A stretch of DNA of 64,000 nucleotides. Origin: Oopsacas minuta. Taxonomy: Eukaryota > Animalia > Porifera. The translations under genes were made by a program, and so were the position numbers. Shown piece by piece: positions 3,528 through 18,493 of the stretch (positions within the stretch are counted from its first letter, which is position 1; every line of letters begins with the position of its first letter). The DNA lies in the NCBI GenBank assembly GCA_024704765.1, contig JAKMXF010000221.1, positions 310,001 through 374,000 of the forward strand. Reading direction: 5' to 3'. A model generated the notes under the pieces. It saw only the letters and a program-made list of their open reading frames with translations, was not told the origin of the DNA and did no database searches.

Positions 3528-5645
3528 ATGGTTCAGCCTAGCCATTATGCTGAAGATGCGCACCCCTCATTCAAACAATCTCCTCCTCTTTTTGATATCT
3601 GGGGATGTTTATTTATACTACTGGTATCTGCTGGGGTATACAGAAATTCATTGAATGCTGGATTTGTATTTGACGATCACAGAGCTATTCTAACAAACAA
3701 AGATTTAGAAACTGATGGAGAGAGGACTATATTTGACCTGTTCTACAATGACTTCTGGGGCGGGGCTATGTCTCGTACACAGAGTCATAAGTCCTATCGC
3801 CCCCTTACCGTTCTAAGTTACCGTTATTTGAATTACTTAATGTTTGGGAGAGAGCCATTCACTTATCATCTAATCAATGTATTGCTACATAGTGCAGTTT
3901 CTATCTCGGTATATCATTTGTCCCGTTTGTTAGTTAGAGACAGTTTATCGTCTCTGTTCGCTTCTCTACTCTTCTCAGTTCATTCTATACACACAGAAGC
4001 AGTAGCAAATACGGTAGGTCGTGCTGAGATTCTATCTGCTCTATTCTATGTGTTAGCTATCCTCGTGTATATGAGATCTATCCGTGGTTATCAATTCTAC
4101 TCACATATATTTCTATCTGTATTTCTATCTGCATGTGCTATGCTATCTAAAGAACAAGGTATTACTTCTATAGGGATATGTATTATAGCAGATGTGTTAC
4201 TACATTGGAATCAGCTGATACTCGTATTATGCAATCTGCCGAAGTATTTGGGTGCTACCAGAGCTGTGGTGAGGGAGAGGGTAGATTGGATTCCTAATTT
4301 TGCGGTTATTCACAGTTTAATTGTAAGATGCGTTATACTGGGGATCAGTGGAACTGCGCTAATGTTCTTCAGATTGAAAATGAACCATGGATCTCAGCCT
4401 ATATTTAATGAAACAGAATTGAGGCTACTGTTTCATTCAGACAGACATGTACGAGTGATGAGTATGGGGTATCTATATGCTTTTAATTACTGGTTATTAC
4501 TCTGTCCGTATCAGCTGTGTTGTGACTGGACACACCCTTCTATCCTTCCTGTCCTGTCTCTATCAGACTCGAGGAACATTTGGCTACCTCTTCTCTTATT
4601 ATTATTCTCTGCTCTGTCATTTAGATGTATTAGCTCTAGAGAAGATAGACTCCCTCTCGGCATGTCTATTGCACTAATTATAATACCGTTCATCCCTGCT
4701 ACTGGTATAATATTTAGAATAGGATTTATAATAGCAGAGAGAGTTCTATACTTACCAAGTATTGGTCATTGTATACTAACTGCTTATGGAGCTGACAAAT
4801 TGAAAAGGTAGAGATCACTAATATTTAAATTTCTAACTTATCGATATAATATTTTGTTGTTATTTAGACATCTACACTTCTCATATTTTAGGAAGTTACT
4901 ATATATTTTTTGTTTATTTGTTGTGTTGATACAAGTGTGGCGTACATGGCTCCGAAATGAAGATTGGCTAAGCGATCTCAACTTATACAAATCAGGAGTT
5001 AAACTTAATCCTCAGAATCCTAAAATGCATAACAACTATGCAATGGAGCTTAAGGATTCTGGGAGAGACGCTGAAGCGGAGTTACACTACTTGAGAGCTT
5101 TGGAGATTGAACCAGATTATGCAGATTCTTATTTTAACTTAGGAAATCTATATGCTGACTTAAGTAAGCTAGAAATTACTATTTAATGCATTCAATATGT
5201 GTTTAGATTATTGTCTACAGATATGCATGAGAAAGCTCTCGAAATGTTCATTAAGTCCGCTTCATTCGGACAGATGCGTGCTAAAACTATGAATAACTTA
5301 GCTACTATGTATATGAAACTACAGCGTTATTCAGAAGCAGAGAAGGCATTCCATGAGCAGATAGCGATGAATCCTAATCATAACATGGCACATAACAATC
5401 TAGCTAGTCTATATGGACAAACTGGGAGGAGAGAACTAGCAAAGAAACATTTCTTAAAAGCACTTGAAATAAATCCTAGCTACGCAGAAGGTCACTTCAA
5501 TCTGGGAACTTTATATTACCAACTCGACCAGTTAGATTTAGCTGAAGACCATTTAAGACGGTCAATTCATATTAATCCTAAACACAAAGGAGCTGTCAAT
5601 AATCTAAACGTGGTATTATATGCTAAGAATCAAAAACCGAATTAA
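3528..5645 (+). CDS. TMTC: TMTC-family protein O-mannosyltransferase (TM region, DUF1736, TPRs), 3 exons
   Basis: Motifs FVFDDHRAI, DFWG, HKSYRPLT, SKEQG, GFIIAERVLYLPSIG and C-terminal TPRs; short GT-AG introns at about 4809-4890 and 5165-5219. Confidence 0.9.
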
Positions 5646-5915: not shown

Positions 5916-8900
5916 TTAATTTTCCGGGTACCACTCAAGAGGTTGTACTTCCATTAATTCAATCTTTTCTGTATCATCAGCTAGATTGATACCTTCCTCA
6001 ATCAATTCTGTAGATAAATCGTTAATATAGGTTGCTGTTGTATTTTGAGGAATGTCTGATGAAGTTGCTTTATCTATATCTGGTAAATGAAATGAATCAT
6101 CTGTGTCTGTAAGTTCATTGTTTGCTGGTTGAGTTATAACATTATCAGGAGTATTAACTTCATTCTGATCATTTACTTCTTGTAGAAAGCACCAGACCGA
6201 GCAAGATCTGAATCTACTAACTTTATACAATACCTTCTCAGTCTGTTTCATTATATAATTGTATAATTCTAGCAATTTATAATTATCGATATCACAGCCT
6301 AACTCCAAGAGCTGTATTAATTGAGAAGCAAATGTCCATCTTATAAATGTTATTGGCTTAGAATCATCGTATTTATTATTCATAACTCTAGTCTGTTTGG
6401 TGTCATTGAAATAAGAGATTATCGCAGTTCTTGAAGATTCTTTGGGAATATAGCTCAATATTTCATCCAGTGAAGCCTGTAATCAAATACACACAGTTTT
6501 AAAGAATAAAATGATACTTTAGTTATTACTAAACTAACCCATCTTAATGTATTCTGTGTTTTATGATACTGTGCATACCTTCTCAAGGTTATTTTCCTGT
6601 GATATTTCATTTTTGTTACTACCTTAACGTAGATAGCCTGTACAAATATACTGGTTATTGAGAAATCCTCTTCAGGGTACTCTAGCAATGGTTCATACAA
6701 CTTTTTAGACAATTTGTGTACGCAGATATCAGATATAATTCTATCTCTGAGATCGATAATACTCCAGAATGCTTGTGGTTCATCATCAGGAAATACGAAT
6801 CCCTGACATGCTAAGATCCTACCTTCATTTGAATTCGGTGATACCTATAGACAATGTAGGTAAGTTTATATTATTAATTCTATCACTAAACACTACTAAC
6901 CATTCTTTCCCTTGGTAAGTTATATCTCTTTGGTGTGGTATTGCTTAAGAGATCCTTGATGGCTGAGACTGATACCCAGTTATTAGAAGTACTATTCAAT
7001 CTCCACACACAAAAAGGAAGTAATTCATCATTATTTCCATTCTTTCTGTTAATCGTAAGAGTAGGACGAACAATATCAACAATGCGGTAATTGTAATCCT
7101 GTGAGAGATCTATGAATTTGAGATCTGTATTTGCCTTAACATTAAGGTAGTCAGTTATCCCTGTAGAATAGTATACAGATTAGTTGCAGGTAAACATTTT
7201 ATATCGTATTATCAAGTTAAAATCATACTTCCTACACTATAGATATGATTAACTTACAACTTGAGAATTCTTGTGGTCTTGTTACCAATACATCTATGTT
7301 CCTAGCGAATCCATTCCAGTTTATGTCATTAACTACTTTGATTAACTGAGTGGGATTAGCTCCTACTGCTAATAACAGTATTATCAACTCTAAACGCTCG
7401 TTGTATGTTAAGAGGTTCATACATGCTATTTCATTAACAGTAAGATCATCTCTTTGTATGCAAATATACCTAGTTTCTGATATTGAAGCTTTCCAGCATT
7501 TCACTCTTAAACTTTCACACAGTTTGTCAACCTCACATCGATTAGAAGAGATAAATGCTCTCTCTAAATCAGAGAGAAGAACAACTTCATAATTCTTTGG
7601 GTTATGCAGAATGTGTATTTTAATAACGTTATTGAATGTTAAGCCCTGTTTAGATATTATCCTAACCATCCTTCTATTAACTAAAACTGTTTTAATTAGG
7701 ATTTCCATTTCATTGTGTTCATATTTGGTTATAAGATTAGGACATAGTCTGTAAGGCCATTCTGATGGTTTATGAGATAATAATGAAGTTATTTGCTTGG
7801 AGTTGAGACGATCCAGATACACCATATCTTTATGGAGTAGATTTGATGAATGTAGGAAAGTGAAATGGTCAAATTCATCTGGTAAATAAAATCCTTGAGC
7901 TTGTAGAAGAATGTGTTCTAAAGAGTTCCGTTGGAATGTTTTAATCAAGTGTTTGTACTTTTTTTCCAAGAGTTCAGTCGAAACTCCGAGACTGCTCGTT
8001 ACCTAAATTAGAAAGTTAGAGTATGTGCTAGAGTAGCGCAAAACAAAGTACTTACTGATTGTAGAATTAATCCATCTCTGTTCTTAGAAACCATCCATTT
8101 CCTCAATTTATTCGGTTGATATCCTTTATTACAAATGTTTGTAAAGTCGTGAACTTGTCGTGTGTTGAAGTCTTGTATTAATCTCAGCTGTTGAAATATA
8201 TGTAGAGCTACTGGGCCAGGTAGACCGAGGCTATGCAACAAACTCAGAGATTGTAGATCCTCTACTCTTACTAGTGTGTATGGGAGCTGTAACGATTCAC
8301 AGGCTTCATCTACAGAAATAAATTGAATTACTGGAAATATGACCTTCGAAGATAATAATTTTTACCTCCAACTTGTTTTATGATTTTTTGGTAGAATACT
8401 AAATCTTTCGTTTTGAAGATTTGGTCAATTGAAATTCTCATTTCTACAGCTACTTCCTCTAGAATATAGTAGAATTCACAATAATCTGGAATACTATACA
8501 CGGGGCATATATGTTTGGGCAATACTTTCATTTTCCTGACATTATTAGTGATCACTAGTTTCGTTTTATGCGGCCCAATCTTAAAGAATTCTGTGACGTA
8601 TTTCTGATCAGGATTTATTTCTTTTGTACATTCAAATCCGTTACTCGTAATATTTTTACAAGCAAAGTATGTTAGCCATATTTTGTGTAATGGTATGCCC
8701 GTTAATCTGAGAGATATGAACAGCTGGAGATCTGGTGTGGCTGTTAGGACAGATATGTCTAAGTGTTCAGGACACCCTCCCTTAAATGCTATCACAAGCT
8801 CTTGACTACACATCCCGAGATAATCTCCTAACTCTTCAGCAGAGAAGTATATACAGTTAGACTTTATCATGGTTACAGGCTTAAGAGGAGTAGGAGGTGA

Positions 8901-11900
8901 GCTATGTATATATTTAAGAGGTAGTCTGAGTTTGATAGGTTTGTTTTTATTCCATACTGTTTTGATTTTAAACTCATCAGTTGAATCAAATTCACTCTCT
9001 TCAACATCAGAGGACTTATCATGATTTGTGAAGATTGTACCCAAAAGATTGGAAGAAAAAAAATATGTTACTTTTGCTGGGTCAGACCCTTCAATTGTTG
9101 ATTCTGAATGGTCTCTGGGTGTATAATATTTGTGTAATTTATCAAACATTATCCTGAAATTGATGGGAATTATCCCTAACATCTTAGCCTTAATAGCCTT
9201 ATTTACTATGTACTTTGGAGTTAGGAATAGTTTGTCTTTCCAAAGCTTCGCTCCTTGTTCCATGATTTCTAACAAATCCAATTCATCTTCAATTTCCAAT
9301 GAGAAAGGTTTGAGTTTGGAGTGCAGGAACTCAAAATTCCAATCCAGAAAATCAGCTAATTCGCTATGTAATATCCATTCCCCAGGCCTGCTGGATAGTT
9401 TGTAACTGCTAGGAACCCTGATTATATCTTCAGGTTTATTCACTAATGCTTTTAATTTAGTGACAGTGTGCGTAACAACTGGCTTTGCAATTTCTTTAGT
9501 GACAGTGTGCGTAATTCGCGGCTTCGGAATATCTTTGAGTTTTTTTCCACTTACTGAAGAGATCTTTGGTTTCTTGTCTGGCATTTTTTTGACAGTCTCG
9601 TCTTCCTCAATCGGCCTTTTGGTACCAGTCTCCTGAGATACTGTAGGTTTTATTGTTAGTAAAATTCTCTTCTGTTGTACAGGCGAGAATTTAATCATTT
9701 TATATACATTCAACAGTTTTTCTTTAAAGAACCCCAATTCTCTGAGATGCAGGAAGCTAGTTAGATATTCTTTCGGGTATAGTACTGTGTGTTTCATATA
9801 GTGAGGAATACCAAATGCGACAAGCATTTTAATATATCGTTTGAAAGTTGCTCTCGTTTCTGGATTAGCGTTTGTGTATGAGTATGATGGGATATTAGCA
9901 TAACTACTGAGAATATTTTGTAGACGAGTCAGTGGGATATTTGTAAATTTAGCCATATCGTGTAAAAGCACCATATTAACACTATTTTCACCTTCACATA
10001 TGTTATATACCATGATTTGGTCACGAGGCTTGAAAAGGTAGTGATCTTCAAATATTTTAAGAATGATCGTTTTATCAGATTCAGGATCTCTCACTGTATG
10101 TATTTTAAAATCAGTCGAGTATATATCTTTCTTACTGTTTATTGTATGTTTACTCTTTCTTATTAGCTTTGCTGTTGATACGATTGTGAGCACTTTTTGT
10201 GTAGTGCTATTTACTAGATTGTATAGTTCAATTAGTTTTACATTGTAAAAGCCGACTTGCCTTAATTGTAAGAGAATATTGATTTCATTCAAAGGGTATA
10301 TCGTTAGGTTTTTGTATCTGGGGACTCCTTGTAGAGCTAATTCCTCGGCATATAGCTGAAAATCTCTCTGTAAAACTACTGTTTTTGAGTTTTTGGAGTA
10401 ATAAGTAACTCCATAGCTGAGTAGAATAAGGAACAAGTTTGAAGGAGGTATTTGAGTGAATTCTGCCAGATGATGCAAGATTACAACTTGTCTGTCACTA
10501 ACAGTGTATACCTTTATTGATTTATTCTGTTTCTTCAAATTCTCAATATCCACAACCTTCAACTTGATCGACTTTTTCTTAACATTCTCAACAGTTAGAA
10601 TCTTGAAATCAACAGTTAGCATTTGTAATGCCTTGTATTTGAATATTTTCAGTGGGTCTACAGGCTCTTTAGCAATGTTAATTGAAAAATCTCTAAGTTC
10701 TATATCTCTGCTTGCTGCTGTAGCTGCAGGTGGGACCGGGGGAGGAACGCTTACCTTCTTCTCTTTGGTCCATAGACTGAAATTTATCTTCTCTTTTTTG
10801 GATTTCATGTCCAAGATCCATTTCACTTTTGAGCATTCAATCATACGGATAAGAGTGTAGCTGCCTAGATCAAACCCTTGTAGTGACAGGCTCTTTCTGT
10901 CTGTGTCTGACTTAACTACATAGATGTACACTTGGTATCTAACTTCAAGTATTGTAATTGGTACTTCAGCATGTTTCCCAAGATCTTCCAAAAGGATGTA
11001 TCCTCCCTTTTTGCTTGGTAGTTTCCATATCTTAGCAGGTTCCTTAGCTGGAGAGACTGCTTCCTCTGAGATTGAGGGAGGTTTCTGTTTATCGTCGTGA
11101 TCCCAGAATCTGATATCACTAAGAACTCTATTCACATAAGTATAGGATAGCAGTTTATTTCCATTTTGTTCAGTTATATAGAATCCGTTTGCAAACACAG
11201 TTTCCACCTGCTTTTTGTTCCACTTAAGATGCTTAGCCAACTCAGGTACAGTAACAAATTGCTCGCTATCAGACAGATCTTGGTCCTCCATTGTTTCTGG
11301 ATATACGCTATTCCGTCCTACGTCCTCTTCTTCACTGGATATCGTTATCGGAACAACTTTCAAACGTTCAAAAGTATTATGACTCGCAAGATCAGGTGTT
11401 GGTGGATAAGACTTTATTTGTGTGAATTTGCTAAGTATCAATTTCCCACGAGCATAGCCGTAGGTAGCATAAGTATCCAATTCAGATAGTGCCTATTTCA
11501 ACACGAATATATAAACTCAAATAGGAAGGGTTAACTGTACAACTTACCAGTTGTAGACGGTCTGTATAGAGACACACCATGGATTCGAGATAGTGAGGGT
11601 CTTTCTGAACATCTCTGACAATATTCTCCCATTTGCCCACCCTACATAGTCCAAGCCCTGCATCTAGTGCTGAAACACTGAATTCCATTATGGTAACCAT
11701 ATCCTGTAGATTCACATTCATTTTATTCATTAACTCACGGATAATAAAGTATGTATTATTCTTGTTATCTTCAAATTGTAAGAAATCTACTCCAGGCTTA
11801 GATCCTTTCTTCACACCTCTCGGTAATTGTTTCTGTCCAAAAATGTGAGTAATAAGATTATTACCTTTGTATTTCTCTCCCATAGTGTGTAGTTCCGCGA

Positions 11901-14900
11901 TATCTTCGTATTCAATAAGAGTAGTAGGGTATCTATAGTTTTCTTCTATCTTATACACCTAGATTAATTAAGACCTATTTTGAATTAATATTCTCTTATT
12001 TTCACCAAAAGTATGGAATACCTTGCTTAGATGTGTCTTCTCCTTTCTTTTAGTAACCCTCATTACAGCTGAATGGAATAGACACCCAAACGTAGCCTCA
12101 CTCCATCGCAGGTATTGACATAGTTCATGTCTAATCACATACTTCCTGTACTGAAGAGTTGGGAAGTAGTAGAATTTGAGTTTTGTTGGTGGATCATTTG
12201 TATCGATTCTTGTAGTTAATACCTCAGTTGGGGTAGTAATTGTATTTGCCTTTCTTGTTGATGTGGTTGATATTGTTATAGGCGATGGTGTAGTTATTTT
12301 GGGCATAGTAGTTGGTGTAGAAGACTGCGCCTCTCTATTTTCTAACAATTCTGAGTTTAAATACTTTAACTTTTGCTTGATAAGATTCCCAACCTATTGA
12401 AAATAATATTACTCATACAATTAGTGCTTTATCAGCACAAAAAATGAACTGTTACCTCATGGTAAGGGATGAGATATGCTATGGGAACACTCCTACTAAC
12501 ACCTTGAGCGTACAATGCATTCATTTCGGCTTGATCTGCTAGAATTGTAGTAAAGCACTGATGCATAGTTTGGTAGGAAATAGCTAAGAAGTCAGCGGTA
12601 GGAAGTGCTAATGCAAAATATCCCTTTCTATCAGGAAGCATGTACTGCTTGGGTGCATATCGTGTTATCAGCATTGGTTCTCCTGCATGCTGTTTATACA
12701 GAGTCTGTACATATTTGGCCATTTCTTCGCTGTCTCGAAAAGCCTGTTAAAATCGTCAATCATATAATCGTGTTTTTTAAGGGAATTATATTTGAAATAT
12801 TTCACATTACCTGTGAGCCAGGTGGGTATACACTCAGATAAGCGTATATAGTATAGAGAATAGAGTGAGCGAAGCTGTTTAGACCAAGATAGAGATTCTT
12901 CTTCAAACTTGTTTTAATCTCCAGTATAGTTGGGAATTTCTTTTTCTCAAGAGGAAATTTGAGTCCAGTGGGGGGGAGGAGAAAGGAGAAGAGTAGAACT
13001 CGTGAGTTAGAGTCTCTGTAACTCTCTAGGGCTTGATAGAAGTTTGTTAGTTGTTTTTTCTTCTTTATTTTACTGTAGTATGTTGTATATGAATCTTCGG
13101 CAGTAGCCGTGTTTTGAGATGTCAGATCAACTAAAGTAAACAAATTCTTAAATTTAGTAATTATTCTCTACAATTCCTGACACACCTATTTCTTCTCTTA
13201 ACAACTCTCTTAGCTTGCTTGTTATTAACTGTTTCAGTTTAAGAGCATCTCTCCCAATAAATGATCTAAGTTGATGCATCTTTATTGCGCTATCCAGCAT
13301 CAGCTCCATGTCTTTAACTAGCTCATTCAGTGACGTGTACCAACTAATCTTATTAATGTTAGTAGCTATAGTGTTTATATCTGGGGGTTTCCTAGGGAAA
13401 TGTCCGTATATTAATATTACTCTAATTCTACAACCATTATTAACATACTAACTTATAGTCAGTGCTTGTTTGATGCATGTCTAGGAAATGACTACACAAG
13501 TGATTGCCCTCTGAATCCTTCTGTGAAGTTATGTAGTTGTATAAAGCAAATTGTTTAGCGAGGTCTCCCTCTACACTCACCAGAGGAGGCGGTTGTAACA
13601 CTTCTAAGTGGTAGGGGATCTTAAATCTCATACCTGAGGATCTGTTATTAATATCTGGTACATTCTCTGGGGTAGAGCTGTAGCTGGGATATTTCTCTAA
13701 TGGTTGTTGTGTGAATGAAGAGAAATGAGAGAGTGATTGATTTTCCAGATTCTGGAGGATAGAGATTGTAGCCAAATGTTTATAATCAATTGTCACTTTA
13801 TTATTATTTTTCAATACCTTAAAACTGCTCATAGAACTCTGAGGGGGACTAGTAGGTCCAGATAAGGTACCAGTATTACCAAATTCTTCTAAAGTCCTCA
13901 TCATTAAGCGATTATTATTTCTCCTCGTGTTCCGCAGTATGTTCCTTATTTTTTTCCTAACTTCGTGTTGTTGTTCTGGATACTTTAAAGTGGCCTGTCA
14001 AGCATGTATTAAATGAATAATCCTATTTCTAAATTATCTTATAGCTCTCTCACCAATTTGGCCACCATGTCTAAACTCTCCTTCTTCTGGCAATTAATAG
14101 GTGAATATTTGTCTAAATATTTATCAATCAGGAACCTTATATAATTTTCAAATTCTCCTCTCATTAGTGTTGTCCTAGTCTTCTTGGCAGGTGCAGATAA
14201 ATATCCAGGCTCTGATTCTTCTGATCGTATCTGTATTAGATCATCTGATGGAGAAGCTAATGATATGCCTTGTGTATCTACTGGAGTCAGCTGTGAGATC
14301 AGAGGACTTAATATGTTACTTATTGGGGTGTTTAATTGAGTACTTATTGGAGTCGAAACTTTACGAAAATCTTGCTTTTCCTGAATGAGGATAAGTAGTT
14401 TAATTATTCGTAAGGATTTAGGGTATATGTAATGTGCAACTCACTTCGTCACTTAGAATCACAATGGATGAGTTATTAGAACATGTTTTTAGATGCTGTA
14501 CTAGAAAATCCTGTCGATGCTTAGTCTTTACTTGACTCTGTGAGAGTTCTAAATCCATATCCATCTCTAATTTCCTATTTGAATAAAGGGGATATAGAAC
14601 TGATTCAAGTAAGCTATCTAGAGCTAAGTATTTCACAATTCCTGAATTGAAGACAGATTCTAATTCCACTACAAGTCCAATCATGTAGTATTTCCCGAGG
14701 TTCTGCAGCCTCTCTTCCATCAACAAGAACATGTGATTCATGTCCATAGATACTTGCATGAAGTTTGTATAACCTCCTTCTTCAGATTTCTCTTTTATAG
14801 GCATGAACTTGTGTGATATCAGTTCCTTTCCCATCACTGCTATTAGCTTCTTCATAATGTTTATTCCATCTGGTTGTGATGCGTTTTGTACCTAAAATTA

Positions 14901-15799: not shown

Positions 15800-18493
15800 A
15801 TGTTTGGCCTTAGATGCCTTCGAAGAATATTAAAATTCAATCACTCAATTCAAAGTCCTTACTGTTATTACAGAATGTCGTTTGTTAGTATCAAGTCTTT
15901 CTTCAAACCCCTAGCTGCCCTTGATCCTCCTCAACCCTCCGCCTCCCCTGATAAGGTGCCTGTTATGGAGTCCCCTTCTCTGGAGTTAGGAGCTTCTCCG
16001 ATCCTCTCAGGAAATGTTTGTAAACGGTCGAAAGAGCTCAGTGCTGACCTGCCACTGCTCAGAGGGAGGAAGAGAAAGGTCAGAGCCAGATTACTGGAGA
16101 GTGATTCTGAAGAAGATATCCCTGATAATACTACAGATAATGTTGTGGATAGAAAGCTAGCTAGAGTAAGACCTGAACACAAACCTGATTCAAAGCTTCT
16201 TGAAGCTAAATTTGATAATTTCAGGAGTCCTGATACTAATAAATCAATGGTAGCTAGTCCAATATCTGCTAGTGTTATATCCAGTCCAAAAATAACTCCA
16301 GGTCTGAATGGGACATTTGATAAATTCGAGGAGAACAGTCTTAAGAGACTGAAGATTAGCGGTACTACTGTTATTCCTGTGACTCCAACCTCACCTCTTA
16401 TAGAGAGAGAATTAATGGATACTTGTGAGCAGGATATAGCCATTGAATCTCCTGTTCCCAAAACTAAATGCAACCCAATCTCTAAGAATACTCACACTCC
16501 AGAAGCTAAGAATTCCTCTCCTTCTATTTCCCATCCTCACATAGTCTCTAAGTCTAATTACTACCCTGATCAGAGGGATTATCATCCTGTAGACAGTGCA
16601 TGTTGGGAGACAAAGACTCCTATTCCCTATCTAGCTCTAGCTCGGACTTTCCAAGCGGTGGAGAGTAACTCATCTCGACTTCGCATACAATCAATTCTCT
16701 GTAACTATCTACGATCTGTTCTAGCCTTATCTTCCCCACAGGAGCTAATATGTAGCGTCTATCTAACTCTGAACCGTCTGGGTCCTGCCTGGAGAGGAGA
16801 GGAACTGGGTGTAGGGGAGGGGGTGCTGATACGAGCTCTGGTACAAGCAACTGGTCGTTCCCAGAAAGCGATTAAAGATGAGCTTTATAAAGTTGGAGAT
16901 ATCGGTCTGGTAGCAGAATCCAGCAGATGTACTCAGAGAATGATGTTTAAGCCCTCTGCACTAACAGTAGAAGCTGTATTCTCTAAGCTGCAGGAAATCG
17001 CTCGTTTCACTGGCTGCTCTAGTCAACAGAAGAAAGTTGAAAAGATATCTGCTCTCCTCGTAGCATGCAGAGACACAGAGACTAGGTACTTAATACGGGG
17101 TTTGTCTGGTAAGCTACGGATACGTTTACAAGAGCAGACCGTCCTCACATCTCTAGCTCATGCTGTCTGTCTGCATGAAATGGAGAGGTCGGGGAAATGT
17201 GCTAAAGGAGAGGAGTTGAAAGAGAAGATGGATACTGCTGTACAGACATTGAAGAGTGTGTATTGTGAACTACCAGATTATGAAAGAGTTATTCCCGCTC
17301 TCCTAGAGCAAGGATTGGAAGCATTACCAAAGTTCTGCTGTCTTACTCCAGGTATACCACTCAAACCTATGCTAGCACAACCTACTAAGGGACTAAGTGA
17401 AATATTCAAGCGTGTAGATCAGGCCGCTATTTCATGTGAGTACAAATATGATGGAGAGAGAGCACAGATACACGTCATAGCTCCTGGTAAAGTTAGAATA
17501 TTTTCACGTAATCAAGAAGATATGACAGATAAGTTTCCTGATGTCATAGATAGACTGCCTCGACATCTGGGTAATAACGTGGCGTCATGTGTACTTGATT
17601 CTGAGGTTGTAGCTAGAGATACAGAAAAGAATCAGAAACTTCCTTTTCAGGTTTTAACCACTAGAAAGCGTAAGGGAGTTAGTTTAGAAGAGATTAAGGT
17701 ACAGGTCTGTGTATACGCGTTTGACTTGCTTTATCTTAACGGAGAGAGTTTAGTGCACGAATCATTCCGTAGAAGAAGTAAGATAATGAGAAATAGCTTT
17801 AAACCAGTTGATGGAGAGTTTGTATTCTCAGAACAGAAGATAACTAGTTGTACTGAGGATATACAGGCATTCTTTGAGGGTTCTCTTAAAGATCAATGCG
17901 AGGGATTAATGATAAAGACTCTAGATCATAATGCTACCTACGAGATCAGCAAGAGGTCCTTCAACTGGCTTAAACTCAAGAAGGATTATCTAGATGGGAC
18001 AGGAGATACACTGGACCTAGTAGTAGTGGGAGCATATCAGGGTACTGGTAAGCGTACAGGTAACTACGGGGGGTTCCTACTAGCTTGTTACGATCCGGAC
18101 AGTGAGGAGTATCAGGTCATTTGTAAGACAGGAACTGGTTTCTCAGATGCTCAGCTAGAAGCTCAGTATAATATCCTCAAACAACACGTTATACCTATAC
18201 CTAAGCCCTATTACAGTTTGGGAACATGTCCTGCTCCAGATGTGTGGTTTGATTCTAACTACGTTTGGGAAGTGAAAGCAGCTGACTTCTCTCTTTCCCC
18301 GATATACCCAGCTGCTGCTGGGTTAGCAGATCGAGAGAGAGGGATCTCTCTTCGATTTCCTAGATTCATTCGTGTGCGAGAGGATAAGACCCCAGAGGAC
18401 GCGACTACTTCAGAACAAATAGCTCACATGTATCGCAGTCAGCAGTCAGTATCTGGTATTATAACCTCTACGACAGGAGAAGACTACTATTAA
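15800..18493 (+). CDS. LIG1: DNA ligase I, intronless
   Basis: PIP-like SIKSFF, adenylation motif CEYKYDGERAQIH, EGLMIK, WLKLKKDY, SLRFPRF. Confidence 0.97.
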   Translation: MFGLRCLRRILKFNHSIQSPYCYYRMSFVSIKSFFKPLAALDPPQPSASPDKVPVMESPSLELGASPILSGNVCKRSKELSADLPLLRGRKRKVRARLLESDSEEDIPDNTTDNVVDRKLARVRPEHKPDSKLLEAKFDNFRSPDTNKSMVASPISASVISSPKITPGLNGTFDKFEENSLKRLKISGTTVIPVTPTSPLIERELMDTCEQDIAIESPVPKTKCNPISKNTHTPEAKNSSPSISHPHIVSKSNYYPDQRDYHPVDSACWETKTPIPYLALARTFQAVESNSSRLRIQSILCNYLRSVLALSSPQELICSVYLTLNRLGPAWRGEELGVGEGVLIRALVQATGRSQKAIKDELYKVGDIGLVAESSRCTQRMMFKPSALTVEAVFSKLQEIARFTGCSSQQKKVEKISALLVACRDTETRYLIRGLSGKLRIRLQEQTVLTSLAHAVCLHEMERSGKCAKGEELKEKMDTAVQTLKSVYCELPDYERVIPALLEQGLEALPKFCCLTPGIPLKPMLAQPTKGLSEIFKRVDQAAISCEYKYDGERAQIHVIAPGKVRIFSRNQEDMTDKFPDVIDRLPRHLGNNVASCVLDSEVVARDTEKNQKLPFQVLTTRKRKGVSLEEIKVQVCVYAFDLLYLNGESLVHESFRRRSKIMRNSFKPVDGEFVFSEQKITSCTEDIQAFFEGSLKDQCEGLMIKTLDHNATYEISKRSFNWLKLKKDYLDGTGDTLDLVVVGAYQGTGKRTGNYGGFLLACYDPDSEEYQVICKTGTGFSDAQLEAQYNILKQHVIPIPKPYYSLGTCPAPDVWFDSNYVWEVKAADFSLSPIYPAAAGLADRERGISLRFPRFIRVREDKTPEDATTSEQIAHMYRSQQSVSGIITSTTGEDYY

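Follow-up and report, generated by a model that had tools for sequence, protein, structure and literature searches.

We describe a tandem array of diverged protein domains encoded in a 64,000-nucleotide stretch of the genome of the sponge Oopsacas minuta (GenBank assembly GCA_024704765.1, contig JAKMXF010000221.1, positions 310,001 to 374,000 of the forward strand), hereafter the window, within which all positions are counted. The window has a G+C content of about 33-42% and carries eukaryotic genes with very short introns. The array lies in a run of open reading frames (ORFs) on the minus strand, at approximately 15486-5919, flanked by a DNA ligase I gene on one side and by an exon of a TMTC mannosyltransferase gene on the other. 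An earlier note on this DNA had reported about 8-10 copies of a beta-hairpin plus helix-turn-helix motif in the region, and had proposed that they represent a possibly virus-derived DNA-binding module amplified inside a host chromatin gene. The analysis presented here leads to an account that we consider probable, although well short of certain, namely that the region encodes an array of 11-14 winged helices of the DHD-like type within one bromodomain-containing host gene, whose product would serve as a nuclear chromatin scaffold and whose array is not of viral origin.

The array appears to be part of a single conserved, intron-containing host gene of about 2,900 codons, because its exons are colinear, the exon ends carry GT and AG sites, the introns (53-97 nt) have compatible phases, a conserved counterpart was found for every exon, and the order of ligase, array gene and TMTC gene is kept in all six of the other assemblies whose loci were compared. 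A word-based protein search with the 1,054-residue central exon (11492-8331) yields seven proteins from other assemblies at 43-52% identity, none of which has a Pfam domain. The neighbouring ligase and TMTC proteins are 68-80% identical between the same genomes, compared to 43-51% for this exon; by this measure the array gene evolves roughly twice as fast as its housekeeping neighbours, while every copy in the array is retained. All searches were run exon by exon, and units 10, 11, 13 and 14 of the array cross introns.

All nine motif strings listed in the earlier note are found in the minus-strand translation, in the region given there. With 14 preceding and 6 following residues included, the nine align in one register without gaps, and exons 12746-12456 and 11958-11548, further upstream, contain two additional copies. 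The motif consists of an aromatic/aliphatic strand, a short turn and the string [YFW][VIF][LI]x2[ED]L[AG]x[FY][LTM]x[IWV][SPN], followed by a second helix in which L and F/L occupy fixed positions. Statistical significance was assessed with a leave-one-unit-out position-specific score in a fixed register over a 38-residue window that spans strand, turn, strand, helix and helix, built on orthologues from seven genomes; the background for each of the seven species consisted of all 38-mers of the gene outside the motif (~1,500-1,800). For each of 10 units, the expected window ranks first or almost first in all species scored, and in most of them it is matched by no background window (p 0.0006-0.017). 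Against the same background, p is ~0.01 for the unit in exon 7179-6889, and the candidate in exon 8002-7235 does not score significantly. When columns were permuted 20,000 times, 10 of 12 candidates had p <=0.003 and the candidate in exon 8002 had p 0.035; the twelfth candidate, unit 1, had been placed one residue off register, as judged from alignment A3. Leave-one-out scoring with local HMMER alignments was noisy, and fixed-register scoring was used instead. Comparison of exons by BLASTP, which gives only marginal matches (best E 4e-4), is too insensitive for copies as diverged as these.

The array thus counted holds at least 11 and probably 14 copies, rather than 8-10 (Table 1). Ten of the units are solid and unit 13 is probable; unit 12 is proposed from a long colinear profile alignment only, and units 11 and 14 were read across introns.

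Table 1. Features of the array gene and its surroundings (positions in the window; "motif p" refers to the fixed-register score against background 38-mers)
Feature	Position	Strand	Remarks
Unit 1 (short)	12456..12668	-	core from strand 1 to strand 4 fills the exon; last helices probably in the next exon, 12393-12337; motif above all background windows in 7 of 7 species
Unit 2 (YVIRHELCQYLRWSEATF, in the earlier note)	12022..12183	-	motif p 0.0006-0.002; C-terminal part probably in exon 11958-11833
Unit 3 (YFIIRELMNKMNVNLQDM, not in the earlier note)	11548..11793	-	motif p 0.0006-0.017 in 7 species; column permutation p 0.0017
Unit 4 (FVTVPELAKHLKWNKKQV)	11103..11267	-	short, excisionase-like; motif p 0.004
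Unit 5 (YILLEDLGKHAEVPITIL)	10800..11036	-	motif above all background windows in 7 of 7 species
Unit 6 (long, VVILHHLAEFTQIPPSNL)	10176..10610	-	extra N-terminal hairpin DFKILTV..IKLKV; in alignment A2, used for the first model
Unit 7 (long, MVLLHDMAKFTNIPLTRL)	9648..10112	-	modelled; AlphaFold pLDDT 83, pTM 0.76
Unit 8 (short, WILHSELADFLDWNFEFL)	9123..9425	-	modelled; AlphaFold core pLDDT ~90, topology bbaababaa
Unit 9 (long, YFSAEELGDYLGMCSQEL)	8643..8978	-	N-terminal hairpin EFKIKTV..IKLRL; motif p 0.0006-0.003
Unit 10, N-terminal part (YYILEEVAVEMRISIDQI)	8367..8591	-	motif p 0.0006-0.004; C-terminal helices in exon 8307-8170
Unit 11 (putative)	7772..8121	-	spans intron 8055-8003; read from the sequence ..GLILQS / VTSSLGVSTELLEKKY..
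Unit 12 (long, weakest motif)	7316..7711	-	hhalign with unit 9 E 2e-3 over 102 colinear columns (hairpin, core, C-terminal helices); motif test not significant
Unit 13 (WVSVSAIKDLL, in the earlier note)	6668..7095	-	spans intron 6900-6845; motif p ~0.01 in 4 of 5 species; column permutation p 0.003
Unit 14 (putative)	6219..6667	-	spans intron 6538-6477; N-terminal half read by eye
Hairpins at the start of long units 6, 7 and 9 (first ~20 residues)	10551-10610, 10044-10112, 8910-8978		
Similar hairpin strings	8540-8591, 7660-7711, 6610-6667		
Introns within the array	12455-12394, 12021-11959, 11547-11493, 8365-8310, 8055-8003, 7257-7161, 6900-6845, 6538-6477	-	GT-AG sites and conservation
Bromodomain A	13193..13562	-	two exon pieces, 13562-13452 and 13387-13193, separated by a short intron with approximate ends
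Bromodomain B (divergent)	12811..13053	-	best PDB sequence matches are polybromo-1 bromodomains, E 0.09-0.12 (marginal)
VVPITISSEEED	11322..11357	-	core PITISS..E invariant in all 8 species (alignment A1, columns P48-S53 and E56)
DNA ligase I	15800-18493	+	flanks the array gene
TMTC mannosyltransferase exon	3528-4811	+	flanks the array gene on the other side

Four units extend over two exons each. The exon junction of unit 10 follows from GT-AG sites and conservation, and its C-terminal half was read by eye against units 6 and 7. Strands 1 and 2 of unit 11 would lie at the end of exon 8309-8056 and its helices at the start of exon 8002-7258, and an alignment with unit 13 (E 3e-4) covers helix 3 and the wing of both units. 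The hairpin and the core of unit 13 up to helix 2 are in exon 7160-6901, and helix 3 and the wing in exon 6844-6539. Exon 6844-6539 ends with the putative hairpin of unit 14 (DFSITSI..), whose core and C-terminal helices would lie in exon 6476-5919; its C-terminal half aligns with that of unit 6 both in hhalign (E 3e-4) and in BLAST (E 1e-3).

The units are considerably larger than the motif. Profile-profile comparison of the unit alignments with hhalign (190 pairs, E-values per pair) gives its strongest result for units 6 and 7 (E 6e-26 over 156 columns), followed by units 6 and 9 (1e-7, 60 columns) and units 8 and 1 (4e-7, 70 columns). Further matches connect unit 4 with unit 2 (2e-4, 50 columns) and unit 8 (5e-4, 49 columns), unit 5 with unit 1 (4e-4, 58 columns) and unit 7 (5e-4, 40 columns), unit 6 with the C-terminal helices in the exon labelled 6482 (3e-4, 46 columns), exon 6844 with exon 8002 (3e-4, 88 columns), and unit 9 with exon 8002 (2e-3, 102 columns). 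There are two subtypes of units, namely a short one of ~95-100 residues (units 1, 2, 4, 5 and 8) and a long one of ~110-160 residues (units 6, 7, 9, 12 and others), which has an extra N-terminal hairpin. The two subtypes align with each other from end to end (E 8e-4 over 98 colinear columns). These comparisons show that the repeated entity is a domain of 95-165 residues and not a motif of ~30 residues, as it had been described; the motif is the conserved core of that domain, comprising strand 1, strand 2, helix 1 and helix 2. The copies do align significantly, both in the motif test and as profiles.

Identity between units is 10-25%, while each individual unit is 40-70% identical between species (seven genomes), and it follows that the array is old and that each copy is under its own selection. 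No repeat between units is detectable at the DNA level, and the copies are therefore ancient rather than the result of recent amplification. The units are separated by charged, poorly conserved linkers, and mean identity is 0.39-0.68 in the units compared to 0.22-0.49 in the linkers.

One unit of each subtype was folded with AlphaFold from its orthologues and the nearest paralogous unit. The model of unit 7 (alignment A2, 16 rows, which includes unit 6) has a predicted local distance difference test score (pLDDT) of 83 and a predicted template modelling score (pTM) of 0.76; the model of unit 8 (alignment A3, 15 rows, which includes unit 1) has a pLDDT of 77 overall and ~90 over residues 10-110. 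The elements of the unit 8 model, with E for strands and H for helices, are E17-19, E26-29, H30-37, H41-51, E53-55, H58-66, E76-80, H81-92 and H98-110. Unit 7 is predicted to have the same order of elements, with a beta-hairpin added before and a strand added after, and both models contain an extra helix within the wing. The order strand-strand-helix-helix that had been read from the sequence agrees with both models, where the beta-hairpin and the helix-turn-helix form the core of a winged-helix domain. The two unit subtypes are thus independently predicted to fold as a variant winged helix of topology bbaababaa, with the additional helix inside the wing.

A structure search independent of Foldseek, covering 48,161 representative PDB chains, places residues 7-101 of SMARCB1/BAF47 (6lth chain M) first for both models, with Z 7.8 for unit 7 and 8.1 for unit 8 (root-mean-square deviation 2.3 and 2.9 A over 82 and 79 residues, respectively). 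The nuclear magnetic resonance structure of the INI1 domain (5aj1) reaches Z 6.6 and 7.4, DACH1 of the Dachshund family (1l8r) 4.8 and 5.0, SKIL 4.8 and 4.5, and the PUFD domains of BCOR and BCORL1 4.6-4.9; Mbp1 follows at 3.5-3.9, and excisionases, MerR and similar proteins at 2.8-3.9. An unrelated chain of a flagellar doublet protein (8glv_Le) has Z 4.6 and 5.8 in this wide search. When the Foldseek candidates for unit 8 were rescored, 13 chains of the INI1/SKIL/BCOR/DACH1/SKI group came first, with Z from 8.1 down to 4.8 (SKIL 6.2, DACH1 5.0, BCOR 4.9-5.1, SKI 4.8), the next candidate being at 3.6. The comparison with Ski/Dach folds that the earlier note had recommended is thus borne out, since SKIL, DACH1 and SKI belong to the top structural matches.

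Allen et al. 2015 described the INI1 domain as a "DHD-like" variant winged helix whose wing contains an additional helix, named SnoN/SKI/DACH1, BCOR, DNTTIP1 and Mbp1 as its structural relatives, and described the DHD-like group as confined to metazoan chromatin-associated proteins (PMC4509781). The list of structural matches obtained here reproduces both their list of relatives and the topology (PMC4509781). The sponge units share with the group the topology, a better superposition on its solved members than on other folds, and a chromatin gene as context. We base the fold assignment on the convergence of two independent models on the same residues of SMARCB1 with the same topology. Membership by fold alone, without similarity in sequence, has a precedent in DNTTIP1, whose domain of this fold binds DNA and nucleosomes (PMC4344507).

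The sponge units resemble the N-terminal winged helix of SMARCB1/INI1 in topology and in the extra wing helix, and both proteins are chromatin proteins in which the domain adjoins SWI/SNF-type features. They differ in that sequence similarity is undetectable, that SMARCB1 has one copy compared to 11-14 in tandem in the array gene, that the long units are extended by a hairpin at the N-terminus and a strand at the C-terminus, and that the DNA-contacting basic residues in helix 2 and the wing of INI1 are not conserved across the sponge units. PHF10/BAF45a also holds a related copy of the SMARCB1-type domain. The SKI/SNO/DAC or Dachshund homology domains (DHD) of SKIL, SKI and DACH1, the PUFD of BCOR and BCORL1 and the C-terminal domain of DNTTIP1 belong to the same structural group (Z 4.5-6.2 for the SKIL, SKI, DACH1 and BCOR matches); unlike the sponge domains they occur in a single copy per protein, and their Z is lower than that of SMARCB1.

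A profile of the 1,054-residue exon, which covers seven units in eight species, finds three matches among 1.84 billion representative proteins with HMMER, all of them orthologues. Over 105 unit sequences, no Pfam family recurs at E up to 10 and no PHROG family recurs at E up to 1. The lone notable PHROG match (E 2e-4, function unknown) is to unit 4, in the copy from the window only, and an excisionase PHROG is matched by 2 of the 105 sequences at E 0.16. Searches of PDB sequences with four unit profiles return only Rab GTPases or noise, and no winged-helix protein. Pfam scans of the exons in the window gave nothing that bears on the units, and a feature search of the ESM Atlas with two units brought no informative match. 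As far as such searches reach, the units form a sequence-orphan family limited to this gene and its orthologues, and our literature search found no publication on this family or array. The fold is known; what appears to be new is the sequence-orphan family and its tandem array of up to 14 copies beside polybromo-type bromodomains.

The N-terminal part of the gene carries bromodomains of the polybromo/BRG1 type, which supports the view of the host as a chromatin gene. Exon 13447-13157 matches the Pfam Bromodomain family at E 2e-5, above the curated cut-off, and the orthologue profile of bromodomain A matches full-length polybromo-1 in the PDB at E 1e-24 over four stretches, followed by BRG1 (7e-6), SMARCA2 and Rsc1. 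Bromodomain B is 53-76% identical between species. Although bromodomain A matches polybromo-1 (PBRM1/BAF180) best, the array gene differs from polybromo-1 in having two clear bromodomains only, with the winged-helix array as its C-terminal two thirds, and Pfam detected neither a BAH nor an HMG domain in the scanned exons. The ORF at 12913-12671 (minus strand, 81 residues) has the look of an additional exon, but it was discarded as probably spurious: it overlaps the frame 13167-12805, in which conservation extends through the final codon in every species and which terminates at a GT. In typical bromodomains an Asn anchors the acetyl-lysine. At this place bromodomain A, as read by eye, has Asn in five of seven species and Ser in this genome (..MLDSAIKMH..), and bromodomain B seems to have Tyr in most species. 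Both bromodomains may be atypical acetyl-lysine readers.

Two alternatives concern the origin and identity of the units. Capture of a viral or phage DNA-binding module of the Bro-N, KilA-N or excisionase type, followed by amplification in the host gene, would fit with a shape search of the ESM Atlas, which lists models of ORF6N, INI1, AntA and P22 antirepressor (template modelling score 0.32-0.43) as well as phage MerR-like models, with a library of viral structures, where a Marseillevirus protein comes first (E 0.012) and antirepressor, KilA-N and Bro-N models follow (E 0.013-0.5), and with the PHROG matches of unit 4 and of the two members that match an excisionase PHROG. The viral structure library gives no match at E <=0.001. 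A viral derivation is unsupported by the rest of the evidence: no viral sequence relative emerged from the 1.84 billion proteins, neither PHROGs nor Pfam yielded a family that recurs, the gene contains introns, is host-like in composition and lies in conserved synteny, metazoan chromatin domains superpose at Z 4.5-8.1 compared to at most 3.9 for Mbp1, Xis and MerR, and the extra wing helix is a hallmark of the metazoan DHD-like group (PMC4509781). The comparison with Bro-N, KilA-N and excisionases did point to the right fold neighbourhood, but these families lie at its distant end (Z <=3.9, library E 0.01-0.5, as opposed to Z 7.8-8.1 for SMARCB1). None of KilA-N, Bro-N, ORF6N and AntA gives a recurring profile match or the best structural match, and the modelled units differ from an excisionase/MerR-type helix-turn-helix by the extra wing helix. 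What the sponge units share with KilA-N/APSES (Mbp1), Bro-N, ORF6N/AntA and excisionase/MerR proteins is the general architecture of a beta-hairpin plus helix-turn-helix winged helix, at Z ~3-3.9 and with the extra wing helix of metazoan type as a difference; INI1 itself resembles Mbp1 (PMC4509781). Among the units, the short unit 4 looks nearest to the excisionase/MerR type. We regard viral capture as highly improbable, and infer that the array arose by internal duplication of a metazoan chromatin module. Hardly any credence is due to the other alternative, namely that the models mislead and that the long units are degenerate remnants of another fold such as a decayed Rab-like GTPase. The long units start with a beta-hairpin of the form DFKIxTV(x4-5)KxIKLKI, and similar strings occur elsewhere in the array (Table 1). 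Two unit profiles (units 6 and 7 together, and unit 9 alone) retrieve only Rab/Sec4 GTPases as PDB sequence matches, with whole-sequence E 5e-4 and 0.07, and each time the aligned region is the beta2-beta3 interswitch hairpin, which holds the Rab family motifs IGVDF and KLQIW. The match spans just ~20-50 residues, however; the units contain no P-loop (GxxxxGK[ST]), DxxG or NKxD motif in alignments A2 and A9, in neither of the two structure searches with the unit 7 model is a GTPase among the best 50 matches listed, and the short units share the core but not the hairpin. A long unit as a whole is not a GTPase, and the Rab-like hairpin may reflect chance, convergence or mimicry.

The remaining question is what a string of DHD-like winged helices would do in a bromodomain protein. 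In the account that we favour, the protein would be a nuclear chromatin scaffold, whose bromodomains would dock it on acetylated histones by binding acetyl-lysine, and whose winged helices, strung on flexible charged linkers, would make many weak contacts with DNA or nucleosomes, as do the domains of INI1, DACH1 and DNTTIP1 (PMC4509781, PMC4344507), and/or with partner proteins, as do those of SKI and BCOR. Several observations weigh against this account or against parts of it. Models cover only 2 of the 14 units (units 7 and 8); the evidence for units 11, 12 and 14 is weak or was read by eye; unrelated models can also attain a Z of ~8 in this search, so that such a value is not decisive alone; and Foldseek itself gives a weak best E of 0.12-0.2, yet names the same proteins. 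INI1_DNA-bd (PF21459) and Ski_Sno (PF02437) are absent from the Pfam matches of the 105 unit sequences at E up to 10, and the profiles A2, A3, A5 and A9 retrieve no SMARCB1, SKI or DACH chain from PDB sequences at E up to 10. In canonical winged helices, helix 2 is the recognition helix. In the sponge units it has no basic residue conserved across units and is largely hydrophobic in units 6 and 7, so that DNA binding is far from certain; we would put the chance that at least some units bind DNA or nucleosomes at slightly less than even. It is possible, if not the option that we prefer, that units of the same fold are purely protein-protein docking modules, each tuned to a different partner without binding DNA, similarly to the PUFD of BCOR, which clamps PCGF1, and the DHD of SKI with its co-repressors. 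The lack of a conserved basic residue in helix 2, the only mildly positive net charge of the units (0 to +11), the strong divergence of individually conserved copies, as would be expected for distinct partners, and the presence of the BCOR/BCORL1 PUFD among the top structural matches all speak for such docking; on the other side, the best match, SMARCB1, binds double-stranded DNA, as do DACH1 and DNTTIP1, most units have an isoelectric point of 8-9.8, and no partner is known. In this protein, bromodomains with a SWI/SNF flavour are found together with domains that have a SWI/SNF subunit as their nearest solved relative. It is a speculative and rather unlikely extension that the array arose when the SWI/SNF-type (INI1/PHF10) winged helix, joined to polybromo-type bromodomains, expanded in this lineage specifically, and that the protein would be a PBAF-like targeting subunit or a competitor of one. 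If so, the protein would recognise acetylated chromatin, with up to 14 non-equivalent winged helices engaging many nucleosomes or DNA segments simultaneously, and, as a bolder addition, the Rab-like hairpins of the long units could mimic the effector-binding surface of Rab.

The array of DHD-like winged helices that we propose is of interest beyond this gene. The DHD-like winged helix normally occurs in one copy per protein, and whether it serves in DNA binding or in protein docking is debated. The array would be the largest tandem array of the fold of which any trace was found here, and its natural variants of one fold, up to 14 in number and each conserved individually, would allow one to ask what the domain binds. 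The analysis also illustrates that a stretch of ~2,000 residues, although fully "orphan", can be placed with structure prediction, and it corrects the tempting idea that helix-turn-helix-like orphan repeats in animal genes stem from viruses.

Other parts of the same protein yielded minor observations. Four exons (15486-14941 and 14891-13443, minus strand) encode the first ~600 residues of the gene. This part is conserved throughout the seven genomes but has no match in Pfam, and the profile of one of its exons, run against PDB sequences, gave no match either. The segment VVPITISSEEED, which lies in an otherwise poorly conserved acidic stretch, is one that we take to resemble a SUMO-interaction motif (a hydrophobic core followed by Ser and acidic residues), as a candidate only. 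The Lys/Pro-rich linker between units 7 and 8 contains a 39-nt tandem duplication at 9447-9524, whose copies are 77% identical and which encodes THTVTK twice; the insertion is not present in the other seven species, and it is therefore a recent change specific to this genome.

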